Of a stretch of 64,000 nt of DNA, positions 8,845 to 49,389 are shown piece after piece. This stretch comes from Geosiphon pyriformis uo1 (taxonomy: Eukaryota > Fungi > Glomeromycota), in assembly GCA_016748015.1 (NCBI GenBank), contig JAAOMT010000777.1, positions 252,347 through 316,346 of the forward strand. The letters run 5' to 3'. The position numbers and the translations under genes are program-made. Below the pieces are notes generated by a model. That model saw only the letters and a list, made by a program, of their open reading frames with translations. It had not been told where the DNA came from and did no database searches. Each line of letters starts with the position of its first letter. Position 1 is the stretch's first letter.

Positions 8845-10385
8845 ATGGGTGATTATTTATACTTGTCACAACAATCAGAAGAACACTTTGAAACACATAA
8901 CAAAAACAATCTAGACTTTATTAAACTCAATCCTTTGCCCTCCTGCTTGATTTGCTTCCTTATTGAAGAACAATCCAGCAGACAATTCCAAGACTTTTGG
9001 AACTGGTTTCTGAACAAACATTCAGCTGAAACCTACACAGTTTATACAACATATTTTTTTGACCAAGCTTATTTTGAAGACAACTTTGAAGAAAGAAACA
9101 ACAGTATCAATCAGTTCTTATATTCCACAACCTTTGAACAACAGCCCCCTAATTTCGAATATCTGAACCATCAAATTCACATTTGGATTGCTGCTCATTA
9201 ATCAGCTGAAACTCTTTTTGAAACAGAAGAAGAAAGCTATCAAACTGCTCTTGTTTTTGATTTTTTTTCAAGTGAATCAGAACATTCCACACAAACAGTT
9301 ACACCTGAACCAATGGCTCAAGACTCTCTACAACAAAACATTTTGATTGCCCTCCAAGGTATACAGACTGCTTTAGGGCAAAGAAACAATACTCCATTAC
9401 CATTATTCAGAAGTAATGTTCAAGATCCAATTGAATGGTTGAATGACTTTGAAAAAGCTGCCACAGCCAATCAATATGATGATGAATACAAGTTTCAAAT
9501 TGTTGGTGGCTATTTCCAAGGCTCTCCTGCTATCTGGTTCTCACAAAAAACAGATGCCAATGCTCATCAAAAAATTATTAGATGGATATCTGAGAAATCA
9601 ACATCTTCTTTACTACCCAGTTTGAAAATAAGTTCAGAACTCCAATCTTAATATCCAAGTGGCATATAGAATTAGAAAAAAGAACTCAAAATCCTGGTGA
9701 GGTTGTAACAGAATATGCCAAAGCAATAAAAAAACTTATTAAATGAATAGATTCTAGAAGAAATTAGACAGAAGAGCAGAAAATACATTCCTTCACAAAA
9801 AGACTGAGAACTGATTTATTATATGCTCTTTGGTCTTTCTTGGCCTTGAAAGATAATCTCATAATGGATATGGCTGTTGAATTTACTCAAAGAATAGAGG
9901 ATAACCAAAAGATGCATCTGGAATCTACTCTTCCAGTTTTTGCTCCTGCTTCTTTTATGGCTTCTGCTCCACAAATGACTGCTACCTCTTTTGCTGCCCA
10001 AACTCAAGACTCAAATAAACAGTTAATAGATAGGCTTACAGCAAATTTTGTCCAGTTACTGGAACCTTTGGCCCAAGCAGTTAGAGAAAATCAACAACCC
10101 CAAAGACCCAGATTTGAACTCCATTTCAATCAGCCCCAACAACCATATTAAAGACAGCAAAATCACGGCCCACCTGTGTACTATCACTGTGGACTAACTG
10201 GATATTTCTCCAGAGATTGTAACAATCCTCCCCTGCCTCTTCCAGCTCCTAGAAACAATGACAATCAAAACAACAGAACCATTAACAATAATGTCCCCAA
10301 TCAAAGACCTAATCATGCTAACATCAATTTCTTTGGAGAGGATCCCTTAGTTGAAGCCACTGTTTATTAGTCTTTAAACTGGTAG
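8845..10385 (+). pseudogene. gag: B1 gag
   Basis: Capsid-like QDPIEWLNDFEKAATANQY; degenerate knuckle YYHCGLTGYFSRDC; stops and one frameshift. Confidence 0.85.
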
Positions 10386-10411
10386 GTGCACCTCCAAAGG
10401 GTGAGAGTGCA
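10373..10411 (+). promoter_or_regulatory. Putative -1 ribosomal frameshift signal (T TTA AAC plus downstream stem/pseudoknot)
   Basis: The heptamer is phased in the gag frame, gag stops 2 codons later, and the -1 frame continues as pol (LVGAPPKGESASQPEEN...). Confidence 0.7.
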
Positions 10412-13048
10412 AGCCAACCAGAAGAAAATTCTTTTTACACTTTTAATTTAACTAATGATGACCATGACATAGATGAACTGGCAATCAACACTTCTGAACC
10501 AACAAGAAAGAAGAAGAAAGCCAAGGTTGATTTCGTTATAGATCCAAAGAAAGCCTCCACATCAACTGTTGATAACAATGAACTACCAAAAGCTAAAGTT
10601 TTTAAAAATCCTCCAAAGTTGGAACCTCCAGAAATTGTACAAAAATCTGGACTATATTCTGTTGTCAAAGATCTTATAAAAACTCCTGCTCACATTATTT
10701 TTGGCCAGTTAATAATCCATCCCCAATTCAGAAAAGACCTTCACAAATCATTAATACCAAAAAAAAAGACTTCAAAAACCAACAAGTGCTCTCATCAAGC
10801 TGGACTTGCTGACAACAGCAATGTCACTCCTTTGATTTGTAAAGCTCAAGTGGCTGGTTATTTTATTGATCTGATCCTAGACAGTAGATCATCTGTAAGC
10901 GTCATTGCCAAACACTTTTTAGAAGCAATTGGCAGAAAGATTGATGAGCCCTTCACAAGACCAATGACCAATATACATGATAACAAAAAGAAAGGCCTGG
11001 ACATAGCCAAAGCTATTCCTGTCTGCATCAATGGCATCAGCATTGAAACTGACATAAAAGTATCTGAAACCAAAAAATACACCATAATAGTTGGCAATAA
11101 ATGGCTTAAGAAAACAAAAGTCTTGCTTGATTATGAACTTTGCAAGCTAATCATCAAATGTGATGAAAAACCCATTGTAATTAAATGCTGTTATTGGACA
11201 ACTTTTCTAATAACCAACCAGAACCAAAAAAAAGAACAATCAGATGAATCAGATGATGATAAGAGCAATGATAAAGAAGATCAAGAAAAACAAGAAGAAA
11301 CTACTGAACTTACTTATACCATTTTTACCAGCAATGGCAAGCCACTGGACAATGTTAAAGCAGATAAAGAAGGAATCATGGTAAATGGCAAGCTGATTTG
11401 CTGGTCTTACTATAATATTTTCAGAAAAACCTTTGACAGAAAACCTGGCAAGAAAACCAAATACAGTTATTGGTAACATGGCCTTTGTGCATAGTGCTAG
11501 TGTAATAAACTTTTGTATTCACCAAGTGATGAATGCAAATCCTGCCTGATCTATTACAAAGATTGGAAACCAATTAGCTTGATACCCAAAGAAGAACTAA
11601 AAGAAGTACAAAAGTCCTTTGAAAATGAAATGCCTGAAATTCAATCCTTAGTTATAGAACAAAAAAAACCTTCTCCTGAAGAAAGAAAAATGGACATTGA
11701 AAATCTGTTGGCTAAGAATAGTCCAATTATCTCAAAAAAAGGTGATACCCTTAAACAAACCCATGTGATACAATACACTATTACCACCAAAGAAACTTGT
11801 CTCATCTATTTGAAGCCTTATCAATTCAATTGACACAATGATGAGTTTATCAAGAAAGAGATAAACTGGATGAAAGATCTTGGATTCATACAAAAAACCA
11901 AGAGTGAATAGGCTTTTTCAGTTGTAATAGTACTCAAAAAAGGTGGAACTCTATGCTTCTGTGTTGACTATTGCCAATTAAATGTCATCACTATAAGAGA
12001 CATGTACCCACTTCCCAAAATTAATGCAATGCTAGATAAATTCAATGGTGCTGCTTTTTTCTCAACTATTGACTTAACTGCTGGATTCTGGCAAGTAGAG
12101 ATGGATCCAAAAAGCAAAAAAAAAACTGTCTTCATTACCAAGTATGAAACCTATGAATTCACAGTCATGTCTTTTGGTCTTATCAATGCTTCTCCTACTT
12201 TTCAACACCTAATAAACAAAGTATTTGAATTAGTAAAAAAAAACTTTGTTCTTGTCTACTTAGATAACATAATAGTCTACTCAAAAACATGAAATGAATA
12301 TCTTGAACATTTACAGAAGGTTTTTAACCTGCTCAGAAATGCTGGCCTTAAAATCAACCCAATCAAATTTTTCTTTGGATGCCAATTCACCCAATTCTTT
12401 GGTCATCTTATTACAAAAAATGGAATCTTCCCTGACCCAGCTAAAGTTGAAAAAGTTCAAAACATTAGACAACCAATAAATATTTCTCTTTTCTTAGTTT
12501 GGCCTCTTACTATTGCGAATTTATTAAGGATTTCTCCAAAATCACCTTTCTTCTCAATCAGCTACTCAGGAAAAATGTCAATTATTATTAGGACACTCAT
12601 CAACAAAAAGCTTTTGAAATTCTGAAGGAAAAACTTGTTACTGAACCAATTCTCAAGCAACCTAATCTAATTTTTTATCTTCCACATTGATGCATCTGGC
12701 TATGAACTTGATGCTGTTTTTTCACAGGAAGATGAAAATGGCAGAGAACATACCATAGCATATGTCAGTAGATCTCTCACACCAGCAGAAAAAAACTATT
12801 CAGTTACTGAACAAAAATGTTTAGCAGTAATTTGGGCTATTAACTATTGGGATCAAAATTTTCTTGGTGCAAAATTCTTAGTAGTAACAGATCATCAAGT
12901 CTTGGTTTGGCTGCACAATAAAAAAAAGCTAGAACACAAACAAATAACTTGCTGGATACTCTATTTGAATGAATTCAACTATGATATTCAACACTGCAAA
13001 GGAGCAAATCATCAAAATGTCAATGCTTTTTCTAGACTTACCATTTAA
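10379..13048 (+). pseudogene. pol: B1 pol: aspartic protease, RT, RNase H
   Basis: LILDSRS (PR); FSTIDLTAGFWQV and LVYLDNI (RT); HIDAS, NYSVTEQKCLAV and VTDH (RH). Ends TAA TAA TAG. Confidence 0.9.
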
Positions 13049-13109
13049 TAATAGTACAACTTCCCAAACCAAACCAACTTAATTATTAGTAACTTTTTTA
13101 CAACCAAAC

Positions 13110-14405
13110 ATGATAATGGACTTGGACAACTACTCTGCCTTAATAGAATTTTTGGATAAAAGACAATATCCACCAGAATACATTCAACAGCAAAGAGAAC
13201 ATTTGTGTAAACAATCAAATTTCTATTTGATTCACCAGAACCAATTATATAAAAGAAACAGAAAAGATCCTGACTGTTCTCAAAGAGTCATAAGATTTGA
13301 AGAAAAAAAAATTGTGATCTATAATATGTACACTGATCTATTAGCTGGACACTTTGGAAAAACAAAAACAATTCAGAAAACTTTAGCTTGTTATTATTGG
13401 CCTATCTTGGGAAAAAACATTGCTGAGTACATAAAAACCTGTGATATCTGACAAAGAAGAGAAAAACCCAATTGAAAAGAAGATATCCATCCAATCTTTG
13501 TTGGTCAACTATTTGACAGAATTGGTATAGATGTTGTTAGATCTTTAACAATAACTCCTGATGACAACAGATACATTATCACAGCTACTAACTATCTTAC
13601 AAAGTGGGTAAAAGCAAAAGCCACTCCAGACCAAACAGCAGTCTCAATAGCCAATTTCATTTATGAAGATATTATCTGCCATAATGGCTGCCCCAAAGAA
13701 CTTTTATCTAATAGAGGAAGAGCTTTTCTTAGTACACTGATTGAAGAACTTTGTAGAAAAATGGGAATATGTCATAAACTTTCTTCCTCTTATCACTCCT
13801 AAACAAATAGCTTAGTAGAACATTTCAATAAAACATTATGTGAAACCCTAGCCAAAACCAGTAAAGAAACAAACTTATGGGACAAAGTACTGCTTTCAGC
13901 TTTGTTTGCTTATAGAACTGTGAATCATAACATAACAAGTTATGAACCTTTTTATCTGCTCTATAAACACATAGCAACATTACCAATAAAAACTAATATT
14001 GAAACAATACTCTTTGAAAAGATCACAATAGAAAATTACAAAAATATTTTGCAAAAAAAACTTGGTACCATTCTTAACTCTTTGGTAAAAGCATGAATAA
14101 TTGCTTTTGAAAAAATAAAACAGTTTCAAGAAAAGCTTAAAAGAAAAAAAACCTATAAAACACTTTTTTTAAGTGTTGATGACTTGATACTAGAATACCA
14201 TTCAGACAAAGACAATATTTATGGTGATAAATTTTCTAGCCAGTGGAAAGAACCCTTTATAGTTAACAAAGTTTTGAACAATGGTTTTTATATTCTTCAA
14301 AATCAATTTAGAACAATCTTCAATGATTATTTTGTTCACAGTACATGACTCAAGAAATATTATAAACGACTTGATTGGTTGCCTGTTGTGGTAATACCAA
14401 CTTAA
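13110..14405 (+). pseudogene. B1 integrase, separate ORF
   Basis: Own ATG; GHFG..TCDI zinc-finger remnant; RIGIDVV and FNKTLCETL core; ends WLPVVVIPT*. Confidence 0.9.
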
Positions 14406-14470
14406 ATGATCAACAAAAATCAAGTATAAATAAATGCATCATTCCCAAAACAGAGATATCTTCAATTAAC

Positions 14471-15127
14471 ATGGACAATTATTTTCTGGATCAAAACATT
14501 CAAAACACCTTCTATACTCTTCATGAATATTAGATCAAAAACTATCCAAATGCTACTCTGACCATTGGAAAACAGACCACCATAAATGATAACAGTGGAA
14601 CACATACTGTTATTAGACCAAAACAAACTACTACCAAAAGAGAAAGAATTGGTAGCAAAATGGATAAATATCTGTTGGAAAGTATAACAGTAGTTATACT
14701 TTTACTTTCTAGCACAATTGGAAAAACACTCCAAAAAATCTTACCTATAGACAAAAACTTGTCATATGAAAGGCAATTAGAACTCTATGGTCATCTTAAT
14801 AAAATTATAGAGAATATGAAACTCATAAAAAAAACAACTTTAGAGGTACAAACAGAAATTTTGGACATTATATGATTAGATATTTCAAGAGTTTTAACTA
14901 TTGCTAGAAAAGCCAAAACTCTAATACAAAGATTTGGTCTCTTGGATACAAAACTCATTTTGCCTCAAGTGTTATATACTTTATCCACAAAAGACTTCAA
15001 CAAACTAGTTAGCTTTGAGTTAGATAAAACTCTTTAAATAAATTACATCATAAATAGCTTGATTTTACCAAAGCTCAATCTCTTTAGAGAGAATGATGTT
15101 ATGGTTGAAACTTATACTTCTTATTAA
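14471..15127 (+). pseudogene. B1 ORF3 (219 codons, unknown function), reads through the PPT into the 3' LTR
   Basis: MDNYFLDQNIQNTF...LELYGHLNKII...LSTKDFNKLV...LFRENDVMVETYTSY*, a single frame with a few nonsense changes. Confidence 0.75.
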
Positions 15128-16273: not shown

Positions 16274-19200
16274 GTGGCAGAATCAGAATCAATAGAAGCA
16301 AACCATTTAAGATTCACAAAATCCTTATTTTAACACTACTGTCAACATTTGGGATTAAATCACAATTACATATCAGCAGAATCAGTTTTTAATTTCTACA
16401 TTAACGAGAAAATTGTCTATTTGTTAGGAACACCAGTAAATACTGAGTCAGTAAGGAAAATCTTTTATAATGAATTAATTCAAAACACTAGCCTACCAAC
16501 AAACCACAATTTTGCATCTATCATTATAGAAATCAATAAAGAAATTGAACATCACACCCAACAAAGATACCCAATTATATACACTAGTAAAGGAAAAAAA
16601 AAACTGCAAACACCAACAGTAACACCCCAAAGGATACAACTACCGATTTGGAAGAAAATCAGAGTTAAGTCACCAAACAACCCATTCTACCACTATACAC
16701 TTGAAAATACTATCAACATAACATTAGCAGGCACGTTCACATCAAACATGACATCAACATTTTGCCAATTTTTATTTCAGAGTAAACAAAAAAAAGCAGA
16801 ATTATTAAGAACCTATGACAATTATTTTGAAAAATTTAAATTACAATTGCCAATACCATTAGAATTCTGATCACTGCCACCTTAACCAGATTTCGGAAAT
16901 GCAAGTTTCTGGGAGATAACAAAATCAGATAAGAAAGAAAAAAAAAAAGCTGAAAATCAAAAGTTTACTTATCAGAACCTGATTTCAGAAAATCCGAACA
17001 TTGAAACCCCAAATTTTCAGACTTAGCAAAATCCAAATTTAGAAAATCTGGAAGTCGAAACTCCAAATTTTCAAACACAGCAAAATCAGAACGATCAAAA
17101 CCCCAACATTAATAACTAACAATACTTACTTCTAGTAATCATCATCAACCCCTCACCAGTTAACACACTACAACAACCATTATCACTACAATTTCTGATT
17201 TAATTACTATCACAACAACAACTGAACTTGGATCCAATGGTCTACACTCCAATAGCAAAACTCAAAAAGTTCACCAGCAAAGAAGATAATGCCCAAATAT
17301 GGCTCAATGATATTGAAAAAGCCATTACAGCCAATGGATGAAATGACGCAAAAGCACTCCAAGCCATCTCCTATTTCTTACAAGATACTGCCAACTCATG
17401 ATATCAAAGTTTAGCCACTAAACCTCAAACATTTTAGGAATTTAATATTGCATTCTTAGGATATTTCAGTAATAATAAGAGCATTAATTGCCTAGTAAAC
17501 ACTTTCATCACCATCAAACAAGGAGAAAATGAAGCAGTCACTACTTACTTAAGATGCTTTCACAGAAATCTGCACCAAATTCAGGCAATCCAGACTGATT
17601 ATTTTACAGCACCATAAATCTTAAATCAATTTATTTGAGACCTATGCAGTAGCATCCTCCAGCGTGTATGCCTGATGCATCCAGCAGACCTTCAAGCTGC
17701 AGTTACCAATGCCAGAGATTTTAAAGCAGCAGAATTAGAAGCCAATCACATTTAAGCTGTTAATCTAGTAATGAACAGATCATCTGAATTGGATTCTAAG
17801 TTAAAACAATTCAGTAATTCCATTAACCAAAAATTAGAGAGATACTTAGCTAACAATCAGACAATTTATCAATCTCTATAATGATGTAATAATCAAGAAA
17901 ACGTGAATTGTTTCCAGAATTAGTCACATTCATTATCCTCAACCAATTAACAGTAGTAGCAAAAGACATGTGTTTGCCACTATTGTAGTAAACAAGAACA
18001 TCTACAAATTGACTGTTGCCATTGCTTAAATAATCAATGATCAAAGAATCAATATTGAAACTCCGATTGCTGGTTTTAAACTCTGAATAACCCATCAAAC
18101 TCAGAACCATATCATCAAAATTACCTACCTATAACACAGCAGCAAATTTATCAACCACCAATTTATCAGCTCTCAGTACTCATCATTTATCAACTGTAGT
18201 CCCAACCTATCTATTAGTTGCAGCCTTAAGTAATCTATCAACCCCACCAGATTCAAACACTGTCACAAAACTTACATTAAAATGGAACCCAAAGGCTGAG
18301 ACTAACACAACAAAGCTGGAGATTGTCAATAATAGTCCATTAACCAATCCCCAGTCCCTTCACACAACCATCAAGATTACAACAATGGAATTTGGGCACT
18401 GGGTACACCCAAAACTCGAATTTCCAGAACTATTTAAGTCTCCTGGTTACTTTAGAAGACACCACATCTAACAATTCGGAACTCAACTAGAAGCAGCCAC
18501 TTACCAGTAATATTCTACCAGCAACTATCTCCAATAACAAATCTTTAGCAGCTATCTTTCCTTTTGAACTCGAGAAAACCATACCAGTCTCATTATTCAG
18601 TGAAGCTGCTCTTAACACCAAACCAATTACCACCATGTACACTAACATGAAAGTTGATGGCCATGTCATCAAACTGATCCTAGACAGTGGATCAGCTAAT
18701 AGCATTATTATAAGACAACTCATGAACCAATTAGGTCGCCAAGTTGATCATGCTACCAGTGCTAGGATTATAACCACTGATGGAGCAACCAAAACTTCTA
18801 TTGGCAAGATTAATGACTTCCCCATCAAAATCAATGGTATTATTGTCCTAATCAAAGTACTGGTCATGGAAGCCATCTAATACCAAGTACTTGTAGGTAA
18901 TAATTGCTAGATTGGAATACACAGGAGCTTCAACTCAGCCAAAATGGCTGACACACATGTGTACCAGTCACGTGTGGCCATTTCAAGACCACCAACACAC
19001 CAGTACCACTTATTGACTTTAAGGAAAAAGAAAAGAAACCTACCTGAGAAGCCTATCAAGTATTATAGGCTGAAAAGAACCACAATAAGTTGCTGCCAAT
19101 ACTCTCTTGAGATAACAAGGGAAAAAAAAGACAACAGAAAGAACTTATCTGAAATACCAACCAAGCCCGGGAAACCAACAATGATCAAGACGAACTAACC

Positions 19201-19648
19201 TGGAAGTAGAAAGAAGATAATAATAAAAGAAAAAGAAACAACACTTACCAACAACACTTATAGTCCATACACTTATACTACATTATAACCATCTGACTAT
19301 TGCCAACCAAAATTGGTATACATCGATTGTGACATGAAATTGTCATCAATAGGTACATGCTATGGCAATAACAAAAAATACTCCACAGCAACCAGATTCT
19401 ATTGTTGCTTATGCATCATAGAGTGCTTTGAATGACCAAAACAGCAAGGAAAATGGGACAATAAACCATGTCTCGCATGTAAAACTATTTTGCCTGACAA
19501 AGGAATGTGGAATGACATTTCTGGATAAGAAGAAATGTGCAATAAGATGTGTTAGTATATGATTCTAATCAATAACTGGATATGCAAGGAAACACTAATT
19601 GACAATGCCTGAAAATGAGTGTTGCAATGATTGGAAAGATATTCCCAT
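16274..19648 (+). pseudogene. A1 gag, protease and Cys-rich region (5' part of the polyprotein)
   Basis: GTG start; MVYTPIAKLKKF capsid start; CHYCSKQEH..DC knuckle; LILDSGS protease (~18674). Interrupted by element C. Confidence 0.85.
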
Positions 19649-20620
19649 TGTTACCAGAGGTTTTTGGTCTCTTTTCTTAAATGTTGTTGATGCTTGTTTG
19701 CTGTTTTATTCACGACTAGAGGAAGTAGTTGAACCTTCGATAACTGAATTTATCTTCAAATTATCTCCTATAATTTGAACCGCTGGGCTTATAAGTGGAA
19801 TGGCCAATTCCGTGCCAGTTACTTTATGTAGTTACGTTGTAGTAAACGTCAACTCTTTCCCAGGAATTGCTCGTCTGGAAGCTCACTAAAAATGTGTAGT
19901 TACTTTGCTGTGAAAGTCAACTCTTCTACAGGAATCTCGTCTGTAGGCTACCCAAATGATTATGATAAGAAAAGAAAGAGAAAAATAAAAGAAACGTAAA
20001 GAAATAGAATTTTGTCAAGGAAACGTTTTCTATCCAGGCCTGGAGTCACTAACAGATTACTGAAATTGGTAGCTAATCAATTTCAAAATGTTAGTTGTGT
20101 TGAGAGAATTTCAAGTGTAATAATCAAAGGATTTGGTTTTCGAATATTTAATTTTTATTTGAGATATGTAAAAAAAGTGATTTGTTCTAATTAAGATACC
20201 TAAAGTAAGATACTATGGTAGGATATGAGAAGATACATTTTCTTGAAGAGAGAAGCTCTTCTTTTATACAACTTGTTGTAGTACTAGTCTTTGAACTTGC
20301 ACTTTTTCTTTTTTCTAGAATTTCGGTGAACTAAAGATACATTTCGGCGAACTACAAGTTATTTCGCTGAACTATGAATTATTTCGGCCAATTTTCATTA
20401 ATTTCGGCGAATTTTGGCTATGTTATATGGTTCAGGGTATTGTGTAAATTGATCATCTCAATTTCTATGGTCCAAATCGGGTTATTGATTAAATGATGAT
20501 AATTGCTAATTTGATTAAATAATAAGTGAAATTCGAAACGATAATAATATATGCTAATTAATGATAGGAATTATAAAGGAAATTTCATGCTAATTAATAG
20601 CTAAAATTCTACTGGTAACA
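19649..20620 (-). repeat. Element C 3' LTR
   Basis: TGTTACCAG...CTGGTAACA; near-identical to 23438-24408; ~19-bp ATTTCGGCGAA repeats in U3. Confidence 0.97.
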
Positions 20621-21308
20621 TAATCTCCTCCTCAAGACTGAGCTCCGTCGAAGTCCAAGCACTATCTGTGATATTAAGATAGTAGTCAAAAATGATTGAA
20701 GTGATCTGGTCTGAAAATTGTTGAAATTTCAGTTCTGTGAGTTTTCCAATATACTGAATCTTCATTTGTTGAAGTATTGGGTTTTGTAGGACATTTTCGC
20801 AAGTGTTGAACAAATCATAGAGTCTAAAAGCTGCTCTAAGTTTGTAGCGAGTGTTTGTTGGTCCAGCTGCTGTCTTGAATTCGTTATGAATTTGTTTTTG
20901 TATAGCTTCAGGAGTGAGGTTTGTTGCTTCAAGTTCCAGTTTTCGTTCATAAAGTGTTTTTCCAATATGAAAGTATCTATAAATAAGGGTATGTTCATTG
21001 TTTTGTTCATTAAGCAGTAGTAGAAGTTTTTGTTGGATTGTGGCATTTGGTGAAATGTCAATAGGAGCAAATAAGAGGTTTTCTTTTAGCGCTTGCTCTA
21101 CAAGTTCTGGTAATTGTTTTCCAGACTGACTTCTAGCTTTTCTTCTATAAGGGTGATAATTCTGAGAATTGTTGACTGCTGGGGCTGGGGTTTCTTTTTG
21201 AATGTAATTAATTTGACTTCCATTAATTGTTATGGATAAGTCAGGAAGTGTTCTCAAGGCTAACATTAATTTTTTGGATATTTGTTGAATATTTCGGGGG
21301 ATAATCAT
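20601..21308 (-). CDS. Element C ORF3, intact 235-aa protein of unknown function
   Basis: Uninterrupted ATG-to-stop ORF; the last codons cover the PPT and the first 20 nt of the LTR; similar to family-B ORF3. Confidence 0.85.
   Translation of the reverse strand: MIIPRNIQQISKKLMLALRTLPDLSITINGSQINYIQKETPAPAVNNSQNYHPYRRKARSQSGKQLPELVEQALKENLLFAPIDISPNATIQQKLLLLLNEQNNEHTLIYRYFHIGKTLYERKLELEATNLTPEAIQKQIHNEFKTAAGPTNTRYKLRAAFRLYDLFNTCENVLQNPILQQMKIQYIGKLTELKFQQFSDQITSIIFDYYLNITDSAWTSTELSLEEEIMLPVEF
20621..20633 (-). promoter_or_regulatory. Polypurine tract of element C
   Basis: GAGGAGGAGATTA immediately 5' of the 3' LTR on the minus strand. Confidence 0.8.
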
Positions 21309-21448
21309 GATAAAAATGACTAAAAGAATAAAGAAATTATTTTTGGGTATAGGGTTTTTATTTGTTTTTGGTTTTGGGTTTTCTTTTGAATTTATTTACT
21401 ATTTTTTTCTGTATTATTAAAGGGGTTATAATATGCTAAATTAAGTGT

Positions 21449-23392
21449 TCAAGTTTGGTTGTTTGTAGAAGGGTTTTGTCTTGGTGCTGCAACTTCACCT
21501 TCAAAAAGTGCAGTTTGTTGAAAATTCTGTTCCTCTGGCATTGTTAAGTAACTTGGTTGTGTTTGGTAATGATTATGTCTCTGTTGAATCGGATTTCTGG
21601 GTACCAATTGATTGTTGGAGCTAGTTCTGTTGTTGTTGTTTTGAAAACGATTTTGTGGTGTGAATTGATTTTGTTGAGTGATTCTCCTAGCAGGTACTTG
21701 GTATTGTTGAACCGGAGGTGGTTGTTGATATTGTGCAATTGGTGGAGGTTGTTGGTATGGCTGTTGCATTAGTTGGGGAGCGGGTTGATAATGGTTGTTC
21801 TGGTACTGTGGTCTTGGTGAATAATAAGCTGGTGGTGGTGGAGATTGATAGTACGATTGTTGTGGTTGGGAATAACGTTGATTATTCCTTTGCTGCTGGT
21901 CTCTTTGCAACTTCCTACAATCTCGTTTCCAATGTCCTGGAATTCCACAATAGTGGCAATTCTGGGGTTGACCAATGGGTGCTGATTAGAAGTTTCCTTG
22001 GTTCCGTCGTTGGGGTGGTTGATATCTTTGCGATTGTTGCTGCGGTTGTTGTTGATTGGTGAAGTAGTTTTCAACTTTCTTGGTAAGCTGGTCAATTTTC
22101 TCTTCAGCTGCTGAGCTGGTTTCACCAATGGCAAGGTTAACAAGCTTTGTGCGGTTAGCTTCTTTCATAGCCATTTCGTAATTTTTCGCATGGCGAATGG
22201 CAGTAGCTAAATCTTCTGGGTTGTGTGGGCGAACTTTCTTGATCAGTTTGTCCTTTAGTCCAGCAATAAATTGATCCAAAATCTGAGCGTTGGAGTAATA
22301 TTCATCGGTTTCCAATTGGCGAATTCTTCTGAGTAGTTTGTTGAACTTTCCAAGGTAGGTCATGACTGATTCTGATGGATCTTGCTTAATGTTTCGGAAT
22401 CGGTTTCGGAGTGTGATAGAGGTGTTGTTGTCGGTGAACTGTTGAAGAAAAGCATCTTTGAATGCTTGCCAGTTTTCAAATGGTCCTTCCAAATTTTCGA
22501 ACCATTCTCCGGCCGTTCCTTGGAGAAAGTAAGGAATTGCTTTGAGCATTCTGGCTGCATTCCATCCATTCGTATCTCCTGCTTTCGAAACTTTGTCAAG
22601 CCATTCTTGAGGACTGGTATCGCTATCTTCACCAGTAAATTCGGGAATTTTTGCAATATAAGCGGTTGCCATTTCTTCGTTTTCAAGGTCTTCTGGTTCT
22701 TCCTGTTCTGATTCAGTTCCTTCGCTTTCTAGGTTCTCAGAATGATTACTTTGATTTTCTTGTAAGTAATCAAGAAGGTTGGTGCTAGTTGATATTGGTT
22801 CCTGCTGTTGAGTAGGATTCTTTGGTGACTGAAAATCTTCTATTCTCAAGAACCGGACAAGTAGTGAATCTGGTGTCTGTGGTTGAGCAAGTGAAGCAGG
22901 AAACGGTGTAAGGGATAGTGGTAGTTTGATATTGGTTCTTTGTTCTGGTGTTTGTAGATGTTTGGCAGTTGTCTTTGGAGTTTTTGGAGTATTGGGGGTG
23001 GTGCTGAAAAGTTGTTTCTGTTTCTGTTTGCCTTTATTGCTTGTTTCTGTCTCTGATTCGAAACCTAGAGAAAATTGTTGTGGGACTGGGTATTTTTCTT
23101 CACAGTATTGGATGATATTAAAATCAAGTTCTTGAAAGTAGGTGGCAATTGTTTCACTGTTGAGCTCCTCAGTATTTAGACGAGAATAGTGTAGTAAGTT
23201 GTTGTAGAGGTTGCTTTTGACTTCAGTAATGTTGTAATCTCCAAATAGGTAGTTGTTGAATCGGTTTTCGATGTATTGGTATAATGATTTCTTAAATGCC
23301 TCAATTCCGTCTTGGATGTTGAATCTTTGCTTGCAGTGAGTGTAAATCGACTGGTAGTACTCTAGAGTTGTTATGTCTGAAGCAGACGCCAC
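21449..23392 (-). CDS. gag: Element C gag (647 codons, one in-frame TAA at 21988-21986)
   Basis: ORFs 21986-23392 and 21449-21910 are in the same frame. Capsid-like AYIAKIPEFTGED..PQEWLDKV; the knuckle CHYCGIPGHWKRDC follows the TAA; GTG start. Confidence 0.9.
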
Positions 23393-23417
23393 TTTGAAGT
23401 TGTTGTTGCTGTGTTGT

Positions 23418-23435
23418 TTCCGTGGGAGAGCACCA
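23418..23435 (-). promoter_or_regulatory. Primer binding site of element C
   Basis: TGGTGCTCTCCCACGGAA, 2 nt after the 5' LTR. Confidence 0.85.
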
Positions 23436-23437
23436 AA

Positions 23438-24408
23438 TGTTACCGGAGGTTTTTGGTCTCTTTTCTTAAATGTTGTTGATGCTTGTTTGCTGTTTTATTC
23501 ACGACTAGAGGAAGTAGTTGAACCTTCGATAACTGAATTTATCTTCAAATTATCTCCTATAATTTGAACCGCTGGGCTTATAAGTGGAATGGCCAATTCC
23601 GTGCCAGTTACTTTATGTAGTTACGTTGTAGTAAACGTCAACTCTTTCCCAGGAATTGCTTGTCTGGAAGCTCACTAAAAATGTGTAGTTACTTTGCTGT
23701 GAAAGTCAACTCTTCTACAGGAATCTCGTCTGTAGGCTACTCAAATGATTATGATAAGAAAAGAAAGAGAAAAATAAAAGAAACGTAAAGAAATAGAATT
23801 TTGTCAAGGAAACGTTTTCTATCCAGGCCTGGAGTCACTAACAGATTACTGAAATTGGTAGCTAATCAATTTCAAAATGTTAGTTGTGTTGAGAGAATTT
23901 CAAGTGTAATAATCAAAGGATTTGGTTTTCGAATATTTAATTTTTATTTGAGATTGTAAAAAAAGTGATTTGTTCTAATTAAGATACCTAAAGTAAGATA
24001 CTATGGTAGGATATGAGAAGATACATTTTCTTGAAGAGAGAAGCTCTTCTTTTATACAACTTGTTGTAGTACTAGTCTTTGAACTTGCACTTTTTCTTTT
24101 TTCTAGAATTTCGGTGAACTAAAGATACATTTCGGCGAACTACAAGTTATTTCGCTGAACTATGAATTATTTCGGCCAATTTTCATTAATTTCGGCGAAT
24201 TTTGGCTATGTTATATGGTTCAGGGTATTGTGTAAATTGATCATCTCAATTTCTATGGTCCAAATCGGGTTATTGATTAAATGATGATAATTGCTAATTT
24301 GATTAAATAATAAGTGAAATTCGAAACGATAATAATATATGCTAATTAATGATAGGAATTATAAAGGAAATTTCATGCTAATTAATAGCTAAAATTCTAC
24401 TGGTAACA
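23438..24408 (-). repeat. Element C 5' LTR
   Basis: Near-identical to 19649-20620; adjacent to the PBS. Confidence 0.97.
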
Positions 24409-24412
24409 CCAT

Positions 24413-27196
24413 GATGAAAATGAACTCTGGAGAATGGCAAGTGCGAAAGCAGAAGGTGCAACAACTAGTGAACTACTGGAAATCAAAAACAACTCTCTAT
24501 CTCTTTTTGAACCTGAATATGTCCAAACTTTTGATGTCTTTAGCAACATTGAGGATAACCCAGAAGAATTCTATGAATATTATCAGCAATTAGCACCCAC
24601 TAAAGAAGAACAAGAGCAGCATTTAGAGCAGTTGCATACTCAATTATGTCAACATTGTTTGATTCCCTGTGACTTTCAATATTGTAATAAGTGTAATCTC
24701 ATTTACAATCTACCAATCTGCATGATTTATACAATTCCAGAGGAAAAGAAACCAATCAGCAGCTATGCATCAGAATTGGAATCAATTTTCAATTCTGATT
24801 CAAACTCTGACAACAATGATGACAAAAACAATGGTTCTAACTCTACTCAATATGGCAATGAAAATAACAACAATTTGGACTCCAATTTAAACCCTAAAAG
24901 ATATATTGTACTCCCTGATCTTACCAAGGAACAAAAACTGAAATGGTTCAGTGATAATAACAAAGGTATCATGCTTGAACATGCACATAATACTGATGCA
25001 GAGTTTGATTTGAGATATCCAGGAAAAGATCTTATCAAATTGAAACCACATTTGCACACTTGCATTAATCTGAAAATAGTACTGGAAATTTTAGCAATAA
25101 TAATGGTTCAACTAGCATCCAGGAGTAGTTTAGCAAAAAAGAGGATCAACATTAGAGAAGGAATAATTGATGCAGAATACATAAAAAATATCATTGCTAT
25201 GCTATAAAATAATTCAGAAAAGGTGTATATCATAGATCCAAATGAAAAGATAGCACAAACAATATTCTTACCTCTGGTAAAAATAACTCAGCTAGTGTTA
25301 GTGGGAAACAGGGAAGAATTAGGAATCACAGCCAAAGGGATACAGAGATTCAGATCAACAGGTAAAATAGATATACCAGTTAATATAATGAAGGAAGAGA
25401 TTATTGACAAAGAAAAAATTATCTCAACTCGTCAATTAATTTCTATTCCACCATATGATCAGTATATGTTAGCCATAAAAAGAGAAGTAAAAAATCAAGC
25501 TCAGTTGTTTGAAACAGAAGCCACCATTTGCAAATCAGAAAAGATTGGATTCACTAATCTCTATATATTAGCCAAAAGCCCCAAAAACATCAAAATTCCC
25601 ATCTACAACACAACGAAAAGTGTCATTGAAATACCAAAGAGAACTATTATTGAATATTTAACCACTAAAGTTGAGAATCAACCACCAAACCACATTCCAG
25701 ATTTTCTACAGCTTTGCAGATATGTGGACATTACATCACAAACCATCTACAGACAAAGTAAATATTATCTGCTCCAACCAGAACAATTGGAACAAATAAA
25801 CATGGGGAATCTAGACCCACTCTAACAGATACAACTAAAGATGTTACTCAGCAATTTCAATGACATTTTTGCTAGCAAAAATGAATTTGGCTGCACCAAT
25901 ATTATCCAGCATTAGATTAAGACTGAAGATGCAATGCCAATTAAACAAAAAGCATACAGAGTACCATCAACTAGCCATAAGATCATTTGTCAAGAAATCA
26001 ATTGGATGCTTGACAATGGGCTAATTCAGCTATCAATGAATCCATAGTCATTACCAATGGTACTAGTTCATAAAAAGAATGAAAAAATCTGCTTTTGTGT
26101 AGATTATCAAAAACTCAACAGTGTTACTCATGGAGACAGTTATCCAACTTCATGGATTTAAGAATTATTCAATGCTTTTGGTGAAAATAAATGGTTCTTA
26201 ACATTAGATCTAAATAGTGGTTACTGGCAAGTAGTCATGGATCCAGCCGACAAAGAAAAGACTGCATTCACAACAAGAGAAAAAAATTTTGAATTTGAAG
26301 TAATGCCATTCAGCTTAATGAATACTCCAGCCACATTCCAAAGATTAATGAAAATCATTTACATAGAACTATTATAGAAATCAGTAGTTGTATACTTGGA
26401 TAACACCAACGTATTTTCAAAAACATTTGACAATCATTTCTATTATCTACAGCAAGTGTTTGAAAGACTCAGAAGAGCAGAATTAAAGTTAAATACAACC
26501 AAGTGTTTCTTTGAAAAAACTGAACTCAAGTTTTTGGGACATGTCATAAGCAAGGACAGGATCAAAACAGATCCAGACAAAATTGAAGTTGTCAAGAACT
26601 TTTCAGTACCAAATAATCTCATAGAATTAAGAGCATTTTTGGGATTTACAGGGTATTATTGCCATTTTATTAAAGACTTTTCTAAACTAGCTCAGTCATT
26701 GCACCAACTTCAAAACAAGAATGTGAAATATGAATGGACAAAAATCTAGCAAGAAGCTTTTAATACACTAAGAAGAAAGCTCATTCAAGCTTCAGTGTTA
26801 ATTTATCTGAACCATAACAAATCATTCATCATCACCACTGATGCATCAAATCAAGCACTGGAAGCAGTACTATGGCAGAGAAGACCAGATGAAAGAGAAC
26901 ATTCAGTAGCATATGCCAGCCAAAGTTTGAGTCCAGCAAAAAAGAACTATGAGACACCAGCACTAAAACACTTAGCTATTTACTGGGCAATAATAAAATA
27001 AAAAGAATATTTGAGCCAAAAATTTGACATTTACACAGACCATAAAGGATTAACTTTAATCCAGAAACAAGAATTTGAAGATGACTGCCATGCTCAATGG
27101 AAGATAGAACTTTTAGCATACAAATATACAGTACATTACAAAAAGAGAAAAAAAAATGGAAATGCCGACAGTTTATCACAAATGAGACAAATCTAA
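24413..27196 (+). pseudogene. pol: A1 polyprotein, 3' part: zinc ribbon, dUTPase, RT, RNase H
   Basis: CQHC..CNKC; dUTPase motifs; LDLNSGYWQV and VVYLDNT (RT); ITTDAS and YTDH (RH). Ends NADSLSQMRQI*. Confidence 0.9.
24940..25365 (+). other. dUTPase domain in A1
   Basis: All five trimeric dUTPase motifs in order, with G>A erosion: DAEFDL, ASRSSL, GIIDAEY, KIAQ, KGIQRFRSTG. Confidence 0.85.
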
Positions 27197-31054: not shown

Positions 31055-34000
31055 GTGGCAGAACCAGAAAACACAAAAGCAAACCATTTAAGATTTGCCA
31101 AATTCTTGTTTCAACAATACAGCCAACAATTAAGATTAAACAATAATCATTTCCCAACAAAATCAGCTTTCAACTTTTACATCAATAATAAAATCACAAA
31201 CTGCTTAGAAGAGACAGTTAACATCAAATCAGTAAGAGAAAACTTTTACACAGAATTATTTCAATACACCAACTTATTAAGAAATTACAGTTTTATATCA
31301 ATCATCAGGGAAATTAATCAAACCATTAAAAAGTACACCCAACAACAATTTTCTATCACATACACAGACAAAGACAAAGAAGATTGCAAACACCAGTAGT
31401 AATACCCAAAACAATACAACCACTCACTTAGAAGAAAAACAGAGTTGAATTGCCAACAAATCTATCATATCACTATACACTCAGAAGCACTATCAACATT
31501 GTATCAACCAGCATATTCACATCACACATGACATCAACATTTGGACAACTTCCATTTCAAAATAAACAAAAGAAAGCAGAATTACTAGGAACCTATGGCA
31601 ATTATTTTGAAGAATTTAAATTACAATTGCCAATGTCATCAAGATTTCAATTACCACCATCTCAACTCGATTTCAGAAATACAAGTTCTTGGGAAATAAC
31701 AAAATCAGAAGAAAAAGAAGAAAAAGAAGCCAAAAATCAAAAATTTACTTACCAGAAACCAATTTCAGAAAATCTGGACATTGAAACCCCAAACTTTCAG
31801 ATGCAGTAAGATTCTAATTTAGAAAATCTGGAAATTAAAACTCCAAACTTTCAAACTCCTCAAAATCCAAACAATACGAACTCTGAAACAATTAATCAGC
31901 AAAACTTACCTCTAGTAATCATCATTAATCAACCACCAATTGAACCAATTATTGAACCAATCCAACAGCAGCCACTTCAACCACCTCAACAATCACAACA
32001 GCTGCTTCAACAGCCACAACAGCAATTACAACCACCACAACAGTAACAACAACTGAACTTAGATCCAATAGCCTACACTTCAATAGCAAAACTCAAGAAA
32101 TTCATTGGCAAAGAAAATGATGTTCAAATATGGTTCAACAATATTAAAAAGGCCATCACAGCCAATGAATAAAATGATACAAGAGCCCTCCAAGCCATCT
32201 CTTATTTTTTCCAGGACATTACTGACTCATGGTATCAAAGCTTAGCCAACAAACCCCAGGATTTCAATGCATTCAAGCTTGCATTCCTACAATATTTCAG
32301 TAATAATAATAGCATCAATCAATTGGCAAACACTTTTACCACCATTAAGCAAGGAGAAAATGAAGCAGTTACTACTTACTTAGGATGCTTTTACAAAAAT
32401 CTGCACCAAATCCAGACCATACAGACTGATTATTTTACAGTGCCACAAATTCTAAACCAATTCATCAAAGGTCTGCACAGTAGCATTCTCCAATGTATAT
32501 GTCCAATACATCCAGTAGACCTTCAAGCTGCAGTTACAAACACCAGAGATTTTAAAGCAGCTAAACTCGAAGCTAACCATGCCCAAGCCATTAATCTAGT
32601 AATGAATGAATTATCTGAATTGGATTCCAAATTAAAACAATTTAGTGATTCCATCAATCAGAAATTAGAGGGATACTTAATTGACAATCAAGCAATTTAT
32701 CAACCACCACAATGACGTAATAATTCCGAAAACATGAATCATATCTAGAATCAGTCACATCCAACATCTTCAACCAATTAACAGTGACAGCAGAAGATGC
32801 GTGCTTGTCACTATTGTGATAAACAAGGACATTTACAGTTTGAATGCCATAAACAGCTAAATAAATAAAGATCAGGCTATTAGTATCAAAACTCCGATTG
32901 CTAATTATGAACTTAGAATTACATTAGTAATTAATCACCAGAACTGTATCAACCAAATTACCTACCTATGACACAACAACCAATCTATTAACTACCAATT
33001 TATCAGCCAACAATACTCATCATTTATCAACTGCAGTCCCAACTCACTTATCCACTGCAGCCTTAGGCAATTTATTAGTTTCAACAAATTCAAACACTGT
33101 TATAGAACTTACTTCAAAATGGAACCCAAAGACCATGACTGACACAACAAAGCTGAAAATTGTCAATAGTAGTCTATCAACTCATTCCCAGTTCCTCAAA
33201 CCAGCCATCAGGATCTTGACAATAGAATTCGGGCACCGGGAACCCCCAAAACCCGAATGCTCAACACTATTTAAGTCTTCTGGTTATCCCAAAAGATGCC
33301 TTACTCAACAATCAGGAACCTAACCAACACAAATCACTTACCAGCAATATACCTCCCACCACCATAACAAACAACAAATCATTAGCCACAATTTTTCCAT
33401 TCGAATTTGAGGAAACCACACCAGTTCTATTATTCAGTGGAGCTGCTCTTGACACCAAACCGATTACTGTTATGTACACTGATGTAAAAGTTGATAGTCA
33501 TGCCATTAAATTAATACTAGACAGTAGATCAGCTGGCAGCATTATTACATGACAACTTATAAACCAATTAGGTCACTGAGTTGATTGTACTGCTAGCACT
33601 TGCATAATCACCGCTGATAGAGCAACCAAAATTCTTATTAGTGAAATTGATAACTTCCCTTTTGAAGTCAATGGCATCATTATTCTCATTAAAGTCCTAG
33701 TGATAAAAGCAACTCAATATCAGACATTAGTAAGAAATAACTGGTTATCTAAAACCAATGCCATACTTGACTAGACAACACAAAAACTTCAACTTAGCCA
33801 GAATAGTTAACACACATATGTACCAGCCATGTGTGGTTACTTCAAACTAACCAATATGCCAGCATTACTTATTAAATTTGAGGAAGAAGAGAAGAAACCT
33901 ACTTGGGAAGCCTACCAAGTTTCCTGGGCTGACACAAAACACAATAAGCTGTCACCAATACCTTTATGGGATGACAACAGTAAAGGAAAGCAGAGAGAAG

Positions 34001-37000
34001 AACTTACCTGGAATGCCAACTAAGCCTAGGAAACCAACCACAATTCAGAAGAATTAACAACTTGGGAATGAGATGAGAGAGAGAAAGAGAAAAGAAAAGC
34101 AAAGAAAAAAAAACCACTACTAACTGCCAGTTACACTCCTTACACATATACACCATCACAATAATCAAGCTATCATCAACCAAAGCTAATATACATCGAT
34201 TGCAGCAAGAAATTGTCATCAATGGGTGCATGCTGTGGCAATGATGAGGAATATCAAATGGCAACCAAATTCTATTGCCGTGTGTGTATCATAGAACACT
34301 TCGGATGACCAAAACAGCAAAGAAAATGGGACAACAAACCTTGTCTAGCTTGTAGGAAAACCTTACTTAATGAAGGAATGTGGAATGACATTCCTGGTTA
34401 AAAAGAAATGTGCGACACTTTGTGCCAGTACACAATCCTTACCAGCAACTGGGTTAAGAAAGAAACACCAATAGAAACCATTTAGAAAAGAGCTATACAG
34501 TGATTAGACAGTTGTCCACATAACAATAATAAGATATAGAGAATGGCAATAGCCAAGATAGAAAGAGTGTCATCTGAAGCAATCAAAGAAATCAAAAACA
34601 ACTCACCAGAATCAATAGAGCTTAACTGGGACTTAGAACCAGTTATTAATCTTCTAGATCTGAAACAATTCTATGAATACTACTAGGAATTAGCACCCAC
34701 TAGAGAAGAGCAAGAGCAATGCTTAGAACAATTGAATACTCAATTATGTCAACATTGCTTAATTCCCTGTAACTTCCAATATTGTAATGAGTGTAACCTT
34801 ATTTACAATCCACCAACATGCATGATCTACACAATTCCAGAAGAGGAAGAACCAATCAACAGCTGTGTATCAGAATCGGAATCAAGTTTCAATTCCAATT
34901 CAAACTCTGACAATAATGATGATGAAAATAGTAGTTCTAGCTCTGTTCAAAATGGCAATAAAAATAACAATAATTTGGACTCTGATTCAAATCCCAAAAC
35001 ATTTATTACACTTTCTGACCTCATCAAGAAACAGAAACTAAAATGGTTTAGTGATAACAACAAAGGTATCATGCCTGAATGTGCGCATGATACTAATGCA
35101 AAGTTTGATCTAAGATATCTGAGAAAAGATCTCATTAAATTGGAACCACATTTGTGCACTTGCATCGATCTGAAAATAGCACTAGAAATTTCAGCAACAA
35201 CAATAATTCAACTAGCATCTAAAAGTAGTTTAGCGAAAAAGAGGATCAACATCAGAGAAGAAATAATTAATGTAGAATACATAGGAAATATTATTGCTAT
35301 GCTACAAAATGATTCAGAAAAGGCATATATCATAGATTTAAATGAAAAGATAGCACAGGCAATATTCTTACCTCTGGTAAAAATAACTTAGCTAGTGTCA
35401 GTGGGAAACAGAAAAAAATTAGGGATCACAGCCAGAGGAATACAGGGATTCAGATCAACAGGTAGAATAGATATATCAGTTAATATAACAGAAGAAAAAA
35501 TTGTTAACAAAGGAGAAATTATCTCAACCTGTCAAGCAATTTTCATTCCACTATATAACCAGTATATGTTAGCCATAAAAAGAGAAGTAAAGAATTAAGC
35601 TCAGTTGTTTGAAGCAGAGGTCACCATTTGCGAATCAGGAGAGATTGGACTCACTAATCTCTACATATCAGTCAAAAGCCCCAAAAACATCAAAATTCCC
35701 ATCTACAACACAATGGGAAATGTTATTGAAATACCAAAGGAAACTATCATTGAATATTTAACCACCAAAGTTGAGGATCAACCACCAAACCACATTCCAG
35801 ATTTTCCACAGCTTTGTAAATATATGGACATCATATCACAAACTATCTATAGACAAAGTGAATGTTATTTGCTCTAGCCAGAACAATTGGAACAGATAAA
35901 CATAGAGAATCTAAACCCACTCCAACAGATACAACTAAGGATATTACTTAGCAATTTCAATAACATCTTTGCAAGTGAAAATGAATTTGGCAGGACTAAC
36001 ATCATCCAACATCAAATCAAAACTGAAAATGCAATGTCAATTAAACAAAGAGCATACAGAGTAGCACCAGCCAATCATAAGATTATTCGTCAAGAAATCA
36101 ATTAGATGCTTGACAATGGGCTAATTCAGCCATCAATAAGTCCATGGTTGTTACCAGTGGTACTAGTCTGGAAGAAAAATAGGAAAATCCGATTTTGTGT
36201 GGATTACTAGAAACTGAATGGAGTAATCAAAAGAGATAGCTATCCAACACCCAAGATCCAAGAGCTGTTTGATGCTTTTGGAGGAAATAAATGGTTTTCA
36301 ACACTAAACTTAGACAGTGGCTACTGGCAAGTAGCTATGAAGCCAGAAGACAAAGAGAAAACAGCTTTTACAACTCAGGAAGGAAACTTTGAATTTGAAG
36401 TAATGCCATTCAGCTTAATGAATACACCAGCAACATTCCAATGGCTCATGAAAATTGTATATACCAGACTATTATGGAAATCAATAGTTGTATACTTAGA
36501 TGACACAAATGTGTTCTCTAAAACATTTGATAACTATCTATATCATCTTCAACAAGTATTTGAAAGATTAAGAAAAGCAAAATTAAAGCTGAATGCAAAC
36601 AAATGTTTCTTTGGAAAAACTGAATTAAAATTTTTAGGACATGTGATAAGCAAAGATAGTATCAAGACAGATCTAGACAAAATTACAATAGTAAAAAACT
36701 TTTTAGTACCAACCAACTTGACGGAACTAAGAGCATTTTTGGGATTTGCTGGATACTACTGCTGCTTTATCAAAAACTTTTCCAAAATAGCTTAACTCCT
36801 ATATCAATTCTAAACAAAGAACACCAAATATGAATGGACTGAAACTCAACAAAAAACTTTTGATACATTAAAAAGAAAGCTTATTCAAGTCCCAGTACTA
36901 ATATATCCAGATCATAGCAAGCCATTCATAATTACAACTGATACATCTGGCCAAGCATTGGGAGCAGTACTATCACAGAAAGGATCAGATAGAAGAGAAC

Positions 37001-43458: not shown

Positions 43459-43600
43459 TGTGGTCCTAATTGGTCCGAGTGGCTGGTTGCATGTAAAAAA
43501 TGCATGATTCACATCTAGTTTAGATCAGTTTATTTGATGTATTGTACTAGGTAGTGTTTGGACCTCACTTGTAAAATGAATAAAAAAATAATAATAATTA
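39414..43600 (+). mobile_element. LINE 3' segment with 3' UTR and A-rich tail
   Basis: Continuation of ORF2; stop at 43458; ends AATAAAAAAAATAATAAT. Confidence 0.9.
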
Positions 43601-44459
43601 ACAATATTTTTTTCTTTTTTTCTTTTTTTGGTAAAATAGTAATATTAAAAAATTAACTGTTTAAAAATAGACTTTATAATAGTCTGGTAAAAAAAAAAAG
43701 TTTTTTCTAAGTTTGAATATTAACTTTATTTAGTTAATTTACCAGAAAAATAAAAAAACAACACTAGATTCTAATAACTATACTTAATTAACTCAAAAAA
43801 ATAGCTTACATATACTTAATTACAAACAGTTTAATCATATTTTTGTGTCTTATAACCAAAAAACTTCATAAGTAAATTTACATATATTAGAAACCTTTAA
43901 AAATTGATCACACTAATTTATTACTTATAACAAACAAAAAAAACTTTTAAGCTCTTTACTTAAATATAGAGTACTAAATATTATTATCATATTCTATTAA
44001 GTTTACTTATAATAATAGTTTTAAGTTTAGTATAAATGTATAATTTAATCTTAATTGACTTAAGTAACCAGTTATATATAGTAAGCAAATAAGTTATATT
44101 TAGTTTGAACTACTTAGTTTGTTTTTGTATACTAGATAATAATTAAGTTATACTTAATAATAATAATAATAATAAATTAAACATATTTAGTTTTTTAAAG
44201 CTTTTAATATTATTTTTGCTTATTAATTAGTTTTAATAAAAAAAATAATTGTTTATAATATAAATAAATTAAATTAAATAATTTTTTTGGTTGTATTGTT
44301 TTTAAAATTAGTAATTTGTTTTATAAGATTTGTTTTATTTTTAGTTTTTTGATTTTAATAATTATTAAAAGTTTATTTTTGTTTATTAATTTAATATTTA
44401 TGTTAAAACTACTACTTTTTTATTGTTTTATATTAAACCTGTTGTTTTTTAGTATTATT

Positions 44460-46700: not shown

Positions 46701-47025
46701 TAGTATTGTATATTATTAATAATATATTTATATTTAAATTAAATTTATTATATTAAATTATTAATATTATTTAATTAATAAAATAAAATAAATATCAAAT
46801 ATTTATTTATAATATTTAATATAGTATAATTTTAATATTTAAGTAGTTAATTATATATAAAAACATATAAACTAAATTTAATATTAATTAAATTACAAAT
46901 ATAATAATAATTTTATAAATATATATTATTAAATTAATTATATTTATGTATTTAAAAAAATTATGTATTTAAAAAACAATTAATAATAAAATAAATATTG
47001 TTTTATAGTAAATATAATTTATGTA

Positions 47026-49320: not shown

Positions 49321-49389
49321 TTGTATTTTTATATATACAATTAGTTACTAAATTAATTAAAACAATAATAATTGTAATATTATAAAAAA

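Follow-up and report, generated by a model that had tools for sequence, protein, structure and literature searches.

In retroviruses and long terminal repeat (LTR) elements, template switching by reverse transcriptase (RT) typically gives rise to large internal deletions with short direct repeats at their ends. Among LTR elements devoid of pol, the TR-GAG group has been defined by a length of 4 kb or less, by gag as the only open reading frame (ORF) and by its presence in two or more copies per genome (Chaparro et al. 2015, PMC4350172); on the side of the autonomous elements, fungal Ty3/Gypsy retrotransposons are known that carry a dUTPase and/or an "additional ORF of unknown function" (Novikova et al. 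2010, PMC2864245). Here, a pol-less LTR element of Geosiphon pyriformis is described, located at 19649-24408, on the minus strand, of a 64,000-nt stretch of contig JAAOMT010000777.1 (assembly GCA_016748015.1); this whole stretch is referred to as the window, and positions are given in its numbering. The element contains gag sequences and a second, 235-codon frame called ORF3. The reading that we favor, with a probability of roughly 0.55, is that it represents a single, young, one-off copy without pol, derived from an autonomous Ty3/Gypsy family with a dUTPase; about 5.1 kb would have been lost from the copy in one step between two 12-nt repeats, probably by a template jump of RT.

Similarly to the TR-GAG elements (PMC4350172), the Geosiphon element possesses LTRs, a primer binding site (PBS) and a polypurine tract (PPT), retains gag, lacks pol and has autonomous relatives in the same genome. 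Unlike them, it is 4,760 bp long, exceeding the 4 kb limit, it carries a second conserved ORF, the 235-aa ORF3, and it has so far been found as a single copy; moreover, its gag is interrupted and its host is a fungus instead of a plant. The element is outside the operational TR-GAG definition. The family from which it derives resembles the dUTPase-bearing Ty3/Gypsy elements of fungi (PMC2864245), having the dUTPase between protease (PR) and RT and an extra ORF between integrase (INT) and the 3′ LTR; it differs from them in that no chromodomain was seen at the C-terminus of its INT, which has a Tf2-1-like SH3 domain at the end, and in that ORF3 has no Pfam model.

The pol Deletion and the Parent Family

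The parent family is organized as LTR, gag-PR-dUTPase-RT-RNase H (RH)-INT, a short spacer, ORF3 and LTR. In the locus L002, which is 77-82% identical to the window element, an LTR and gag are followed by 5.1 kb coding for PR, dUTPase, RT, RH and INT, then by an intact 235-aa ORF3 and by the second LTR; in L009, which is an environmental contig, gag-PR-dUTPase-RT-RH-INT precedes an ORF3 homologue with 28% identity, whose stop codon also lies within the 3′ LTR. Domain searches of the internal ORFs of the window copy yielded matches to Retrotrans_gag/Ty3_capsid and zf-CCHC only (Pfam: PF03732, 2.3e-16; PF19259, 3.2e-10; PF00098, 1.9e-5), and none of PR, RT, RH and INT was detected in them. Since pol, in the order PR-RT-RH-INT, is absent here but present in L002 and L009, the copy is a deletion derivative of a Ty3/Gypsy family and not an autonomous member of it.

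Closer pol-bearing relatives, with 97-98% nucleotide identity, were identified in the loci L005, L007, L008 and L001. On the gag side, the nearest copy is L005, which is ~98% identical and has 13 derived sites in common with the window, while on the ORF3 side the nearest ones are L001, L007 and L008 (97.7-98.1% identical). The 3′ LTR of the window copy diverges by 0.9-2.1% from those of L005, L008, L001 and L007, the PBS of the relatives is identical or 1 nt different, and the end of ORF3 with the PPT is identical; an autonomous partner with matching LTR, PBS and PPT, such as a satellite lineage would use, is present. The "family A" Gypsy copies of the window were also considered as the partner and were rejected, as their gag is only ~36% identical and they have no ORF3 homologue.

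The relatives contain both parental sites of a 12-nt sequence, CAACAACCAAAC, which is found once in the window (21463-21453) and forms there the deletion junction, with a microhomology of 11-12 nt (21453-21463, minus strand, gag being on the 5′ side). The left repeat is placed in the gag-PR linker, ~57 codons ahead of the protease active site, and the right repeat just past the pol stop codon, upstream of ORF3; the window lacks everything between the two copies of CAACAACCAAAC, which corresponds to one deletion of ~5.1 kb. In L005, the gag tail proceeds straight into PR, in a single reading frame, at the point where the window jumps to the post-pol spacer. From base 21452 onward, the window carries the sequence that in the relatives comes after the pol stop, and in L001, L007 and L008 the end of the integrase and the pol stop are located upstream of this same spacer. 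The A-rich spacer of the window copy (21309-21448, minus strand) is inherited from the parental region between the pol stop and ORF3. A match of 11-12 nt at both ends greatly exceeds what chance would give (roughly 4^-11 per breakpoint pair). ORF3 survived because the right-hand repeat falls between the pol stop and ORF3; as judged from these breakpoints, its retention in the window copy is passive.

One large deletion, a 12-nt direct repeat, intact LTRs and cis signals and a target site duplication (TSD) are features shared with the internally deleted retroviral proviruses and LTR cDNAs that are generally known; the difference is that, for the window element, an origin during reverse transcription is what we infer. 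RT would have jumped template between the two 12-nt repeats in the cycle that made the window copy, and the cDNA would already have been deleted of pol at integration. The integrase of the parent would then have inserted the deleted cDNA into an old Gypsy copy, generating the CCAT duplication, and decay would have begun after insertion, with a nonsense codon in gag, for which this timing is likely though not certain, and with CpG transitions in the LTRs. The copy is an unusually clean case of an internally deleted LTR element, in which both parental breakpoints and the 12-nt microhomology are directly readable, and it is otherwise an ordinary transposon copy; it reveals, in Geosiphon pyriformis, a large Ty3/Gypsy family that bears a dUTPase, was active in recent times and has a third, conserved ORF.

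Age of the Element and Insertion Site

The element was delimited by LTR alignment and by its flanks. The 3′ LTR (19649-20620, minus strand) is 972 nt long and the 5′ LTR (23438-24408, minus strand) 971 nt; both have TG..CA ends, within 7-bp inverted termini. Their alignment revealed 3 substitutions and one 1-nt indel, corresponding to 99.6% identity, and two of the three substitutions are CpG transitions. The 16-nt PBS, TGGTGCTCTCCCACGG (23420-23435, minus strand), starts with TGG and is located 2 nt past the 5′ LTR; no tRNA gene was found in the window or in the fetched loci. The PPT, GAGGAGGAGATTA (20621-20633, minus strand), is directly upstream of the 3′ LTR and within the final codons of ORF3. 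The TSD, CCAT, is perfect yet merely 4 bp long (19645-19648 on the left and 24409-24412 on the right), and both its copies were defined by the alignment of the flanks and by comparison with a paralogous uninterrupted site. LTRs with TG..CA ends and a short TSD are in agreement with a Ty3/Gypsy element. Each LTR also includes ~3.4 tandem units of 20-21 nt with the CpG core ATTTCGGCGAA (20320-20388 and 24108-24176), which may be regulatory repeats in U3.

The element has an observed/expected ratio (o/e) of CpG of 0.65, with 0.9 for the LTRs, compared with 0.04-0.17 in all flanking repeats, where TpG/CpA is raised. The 99.6% identity of the LTRs, together with the preservation of the CpGs, indicates that the element is young; it is recently inserted and retains every cis signal required for mobilisation. 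Its left flank (18650-19602) and right flank (24564-25388) align to 33487-34475 and 34664-35488, respectively, which belong to a paralogous older Gypsy in the same window. Since the flanks are contiguous in this old copy (33487-35488), the insertion is a true one, and from the same alignment the host site is an old Gypsy element, interrupted between its protease and dUTPase regions. The family hit by the insertion has a dUTPase domain after the protease, too (24434-25825 and 34732-35391), and no ORF3 homologue was detected in it.

Structure of gag

The proximal part of gag (21989-23392, minus strand) comprises 468 codons, with the Retrotrans_gag and Ty3_capsid match at residues 285-410, and the distal part (21449-21985, minus strand) comprises 178 codons, in which a Q/P-rich tail comes after a CCHC zinc knuckle. 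Between the capsid part and the zinc-knuckle part, the frame is interrupted by a TAA (21986-21988, minus strand), and gag was queried as two pieces, one on each side of this codon. The Ty3-type capsid and the CCHC knuckle expected of a Ty3/Gypsy element are both there, though the stop separates the two parts in the window copy. The distal part terminates at a TGA that was created one codon past the deletion junction. Because L005 and L004, the two 98-99% identical copies that cover the site, have a sense codon at the position of the TAA, the latter is private to the window copy; it is likely to have arisen after insertion.

Homologues of gag number >500. Between subfamilies, the ratio of nonsynonymous to synonymous substitution rates (dN/dS) is 0.14 for gag as a whole, with a value of 0.06 for the capsid. 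The gag ORF was compared in five copies (the window and L002-L005), and in each of them it starts with GTG (23392 in the window, minus strand) instead of ATG; no in-frame ATG occurs before codon 243. Even so, codons 1-242 are constrained (dN/dS 0.20 versus L002); the GTG start and this constraint suggest that gag may be expressed via non-AUG initiation or an upstream exon.

A preliminary description of the element, made from the sequence alone, had reported about 4 differences between the LTRs (in fact 3 substitutions and 1 indel over 972/971 nt), a perfect TSD accompanied by PBS and PPT, CpGs intact amid eroded repeats and the absence of pol beside a lesion-free 235-aa ORF3; each of these features was found again. 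It had also stated that gag is kept, which holds for the capsid and zinc-knuckle parts but not for their continuity, the in-frame TAA splitting gag.

Search for Other Copies with the Junction

The gag/ORF3 junction was found in none of the four close copies having an assembled junction region (L001, L005, L007 and L008), all of which have pol sequence on one side of it, and no second junction copy turned up in the nine fetched loci or in the annotated proteome; this negative is provisional, the genome not having been searched by DNA. A search with the stored protein P0244, which is the annotators' own spliced model as stored in the database, showed no other annotated protein joining the gag tail to ORF3. 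The gag-tail motif is found elsewhere only in the L005 model, where it runs on into PR, and L004 stops ~50 nt before the junction. At its first appearance in BLAST, L005 was considered as a second carrier of the junction; it was rejected, since its gag continues into PR and the remainder lies in N gaps. Exact-pattern scans of the metagenome contigs of the Joint Genome Institute (JGI) gave 0 matches for the junction and also 0 for a control motif common to the full-length copies, and are hence uninformative.

On either side of the junction, pol-bearing copies match the window with ~98% identity, which indicates that the deletion is very recent, younger than ~1-2% divergence from those copies, and that any sister copies should share at least ~98% identity with the window. 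Among the annotated ORF3s, this level is reached only by P0242 and P0243, which have the integrase end and the pol stop ahead of them. In L003, a ~97% identical copy, a gap of 2,610 N (11901-14510 of that locus) comes after gag position 1894, with a 3′ LTR beyond it; the length of this gap was not trusted as evidence of a second deleted copy, gap sizes in the assembly being inconsistent. Shared derived sites put the window closer to L005 than to L003. A propagating satellite lineage is not supported and, provisionally, the window copy is a one-off.

Conservation, Retention and Product of ORF3

ORF3 (20601-21308, minus strand) is open and consists of 235 codons and a stop, the latter located 18-20 nt inside the 3′ LTR; its length of 235 aa is the same as in the relatives. 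More than 200 annotated copies are homologous to it, the best 120 listed being all "hypothetical protein" of Geosiphon pyriformis, and the family was found in G. pyriformis and in a few environmental contigs only. Between subfamilies, dN/dS of ORF3 is 0.19. The most conserved stretch of the protein is SLEEEIMLP, at the C-terminus, which is kept even in the 28%-identical homologues and is the translation of the PPT and of the first LTR bases; its conservation at 28% overall identity, together with the overlap with PPT and LTR, points to a dual constraint. Because ORF3 occupies the same position in L002 and L009, it is a regular part of the autonomous lineage and, on sequence evidence, a selectively maintained accessory gene of it.

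Among the copies with 97-98% identity, which have few changes, dN/dS of ORF3 is 0.45-1.3, indistinguishable from neutral. At the divergence of the LTRs, the neutral expectation is of 1-2 substitutions in ORF3, and 5.8% of the possible substitutions are disabling; the probability that ORF3 is open by chance at the age of the element is 0.88-0.94 under neutrality, so that an intact ORF3 is no sign of selection in the window copy. A second pol-less derivative, L010 (JAAOMT010000597.1, 5857-9760), is older and independent, and belongs to a related subfamily; it has a divergence of 5% between its LTRs and is flanked by the TSD TTGT. The deletion in L010 extends from the Q-rich gag tail to mid-ORF3, with loss of pol, of the tail of gag and of codons 1-~159 of ORF3. 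As its end points differ from those of the window element, internal deletions recur in the family and ORF3 is not systematically spared.

No significant match to the ORF3 protein was found in Pfam, PHROGs or PDB sequences, with either single-sequence or profile searches. The AlphaFold2 model, with a mean predicted local distance difference test score (pLDDT) of 62.6, rising to ~85 in the core (residues 81-160), comprises a helix and a hairpin at the N-terminus, a disordered linker of basic character and a bundle of helices; a profile match to FtsQ (E 0.02) was taken as chance, since the model is helical. Foldseek searches with this model returned nothing significant, the best E values being 0.7 in PDB and 0.17 in BFVD. 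The maximum of the Kyte-Doolittle hydropathy in a 19-residue window is 0.83, with no hydrophobic segment, and the isoelectric point (pI) is 7.8; on these grounds the protein is predicted to be soluble, without a transmembrane segment, and not env-like, and the fold model predicts it to be mostly helical. The env-like third ORFs of errantiviruses and of plant Athila-type Gypsy elements have in common with ORF3 the location between pol and the 3′ LTR and a plausible spliced subgenomic mRNA; unlike them, ORF3 shows no hydrophobic segment and no significant fold match (PDB, BFVD), and an env-like identity was rejected for these reasons and for the lack of a Pfam match.

A pyrimidine tract with TTAG (AG at 21321-21320) is found 12 nt upstream of the ORF3 start and is conserved across subfamilies (L001, L002a/b, L007 and L008); it represents a candidate splice acceptor, and ORF3 is probably translated from a spliced subgenomic RNA. 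Our best guess is that ORF3 is a non-enzymatic accessory factor in the replication cycle of the parent, and it lends itself to study as a candidate for a new accessory protein of retroelements.

Origin of the Deleted Copy

The same junction could have been produced in chromosomal DNA, if a full-length copy was inserted and pol was lost later, the two 12-nt repeats having undergone either illegitimate, microhomology-mediated recombination or slippage during replication. Such a deletion would leave a signature identical to that of a template jump, the junction has been seen at the window locus only, and in plants LTR elements with internal deletions are documented to arise by illegitimate recombination between short repeats. 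Recombination is invoked in the TR-GAG paper, too (PMC4350172). However, there was little time for such a loss, the LTRs having 3 substitutions and 1 indel and the copy a handful of private changes, and genomic DNA only rarely loses 5 kb between 12-nt repeats in a given span of time; a deletion after insertion is considered doubtful, though to be taken seriously. An artefact of the assembly, by collapse or mis-join of a full-length copy, could be suspected because elsewhere the assembly of young copies of the family is poor and broken by many N gaps; it is very improbable, as the window copy is without Ns, a 12-nt repeat is far below the k-mers or read overlaps of assemblers, and the precise microhomology junction points to a biological event.

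The preliminary description had instead proposed a recent satellite mobilised in trans, and had taken the retention of ORF3 as implying a benefit to the element. In its general form, a satellite lineage repeatedly mobilised in trans by the autonomous family, with ORF3 kept as a benefit to the non-autonomous element, agrees with the integrity of all cis signals (LTRs, PBS, PPT and leader/gag region), with the recent insertion, with pol-bearing partners whose LTRs are 97-98% identical, with the purifying selection acting on ORF3 family-wide and with L003 as a possible second copy. Yet no second junction copy was found in the four close assembled copies or in the annotated proteins, the closest ORF3s, P0242 and P0243, follow pol sequence, gag has a nonsense codon in the window, and L010 shows that a pol-less derivative can exist without an intact ORF3; we regard this lineage as improbable. 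Of the earlier proposal, recency, the absence of pol and the existence of close pol-bearing relatives stand, and the autonomous partner that was sought is available in L005, L007, L008 and L001, at 97-98% nucleotide identity; no lineage emerged and the junction is not shared. A junction unique to this locus had been named beforehand as the finding that would speak against the satellite, and this is what has been found so far, in a genome unsearched by DNA. On the neutrality of ORF3, the other point on which the proposal was to be judged, the values show constraint between subfamilies (0.19) and are not separable from neutrality among the 97-98% identical copies (0.45-1.3). The argument from benefit is not supported, since ORF3 is a gene of the parent, the right breakpoint is upstream of it, chance suffices to keep it open and L010 has lost most of it.

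A one-off copy produced by a template jump is thus the explanation that we retain, and the following points weigh against it. The timing of the deletion, whether in reverse transcription or after integration, is not readable from one copy; N gaps abound in the young copies of this assembly; the nominal length of the L003 gap is nearer to the deleted than to the full form; and unannotated sister copies with the junction are possible, since the assembly is unsearched by DNA. As for ORF3, the confidence of its fold model is no more than moderate (pLDDT 62.6), and its spliced expression is deduced from sequence features. A bolder proposal, to which we give little credit, is that the window copy founded, or belongs to, a trans-mobilised lineage, in which ORF3 would be a so far undescribed accessory gene of a Glomeromycotina Gypsy clade, sharing its last codons with the PPT and the LTR end, that also pays for the non-autonomous element (by counter-silencing, nuclear import or particle assembly), or in which the truncated gag would regulate the copy number of the parent.

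Additional Observations

Many "hypothetical proteins" of G. pyriformis are ORFs of the transposable element (TE) family to which the window element belongs. The annotated gene G9A89_023646 (KAG9284389.1, P0244; window 20601-21770) is a chimera, an ab initio model in which splicing joins the gag tail to ORF3; the NCBI gene models of this fungus include such TE chimeras, which inflate the count of hypothetical proteins.

In L002, the segment made of ORF3 and 3′ LTR is present twice in tandem (9833-13592 of that locus). The second ORF3 copy contains 9 stops and has only 60% protein identity; the second segment is probably what is left of the 3′ part of an older copy next to it.

The base composition of the window is uneven: stretches with 8-18% GC, located at 43500-47000, 49000-52900 and 56000-59000, alternate with blocks with ~35-40% GC and a near-normal CpG o/e of 0.8-0.9, at 52900-56000 and 59000-64000. 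The latter are presumably unmethylated host genes. An ORF at 62459-62947 contains an RNA-ligase domain.

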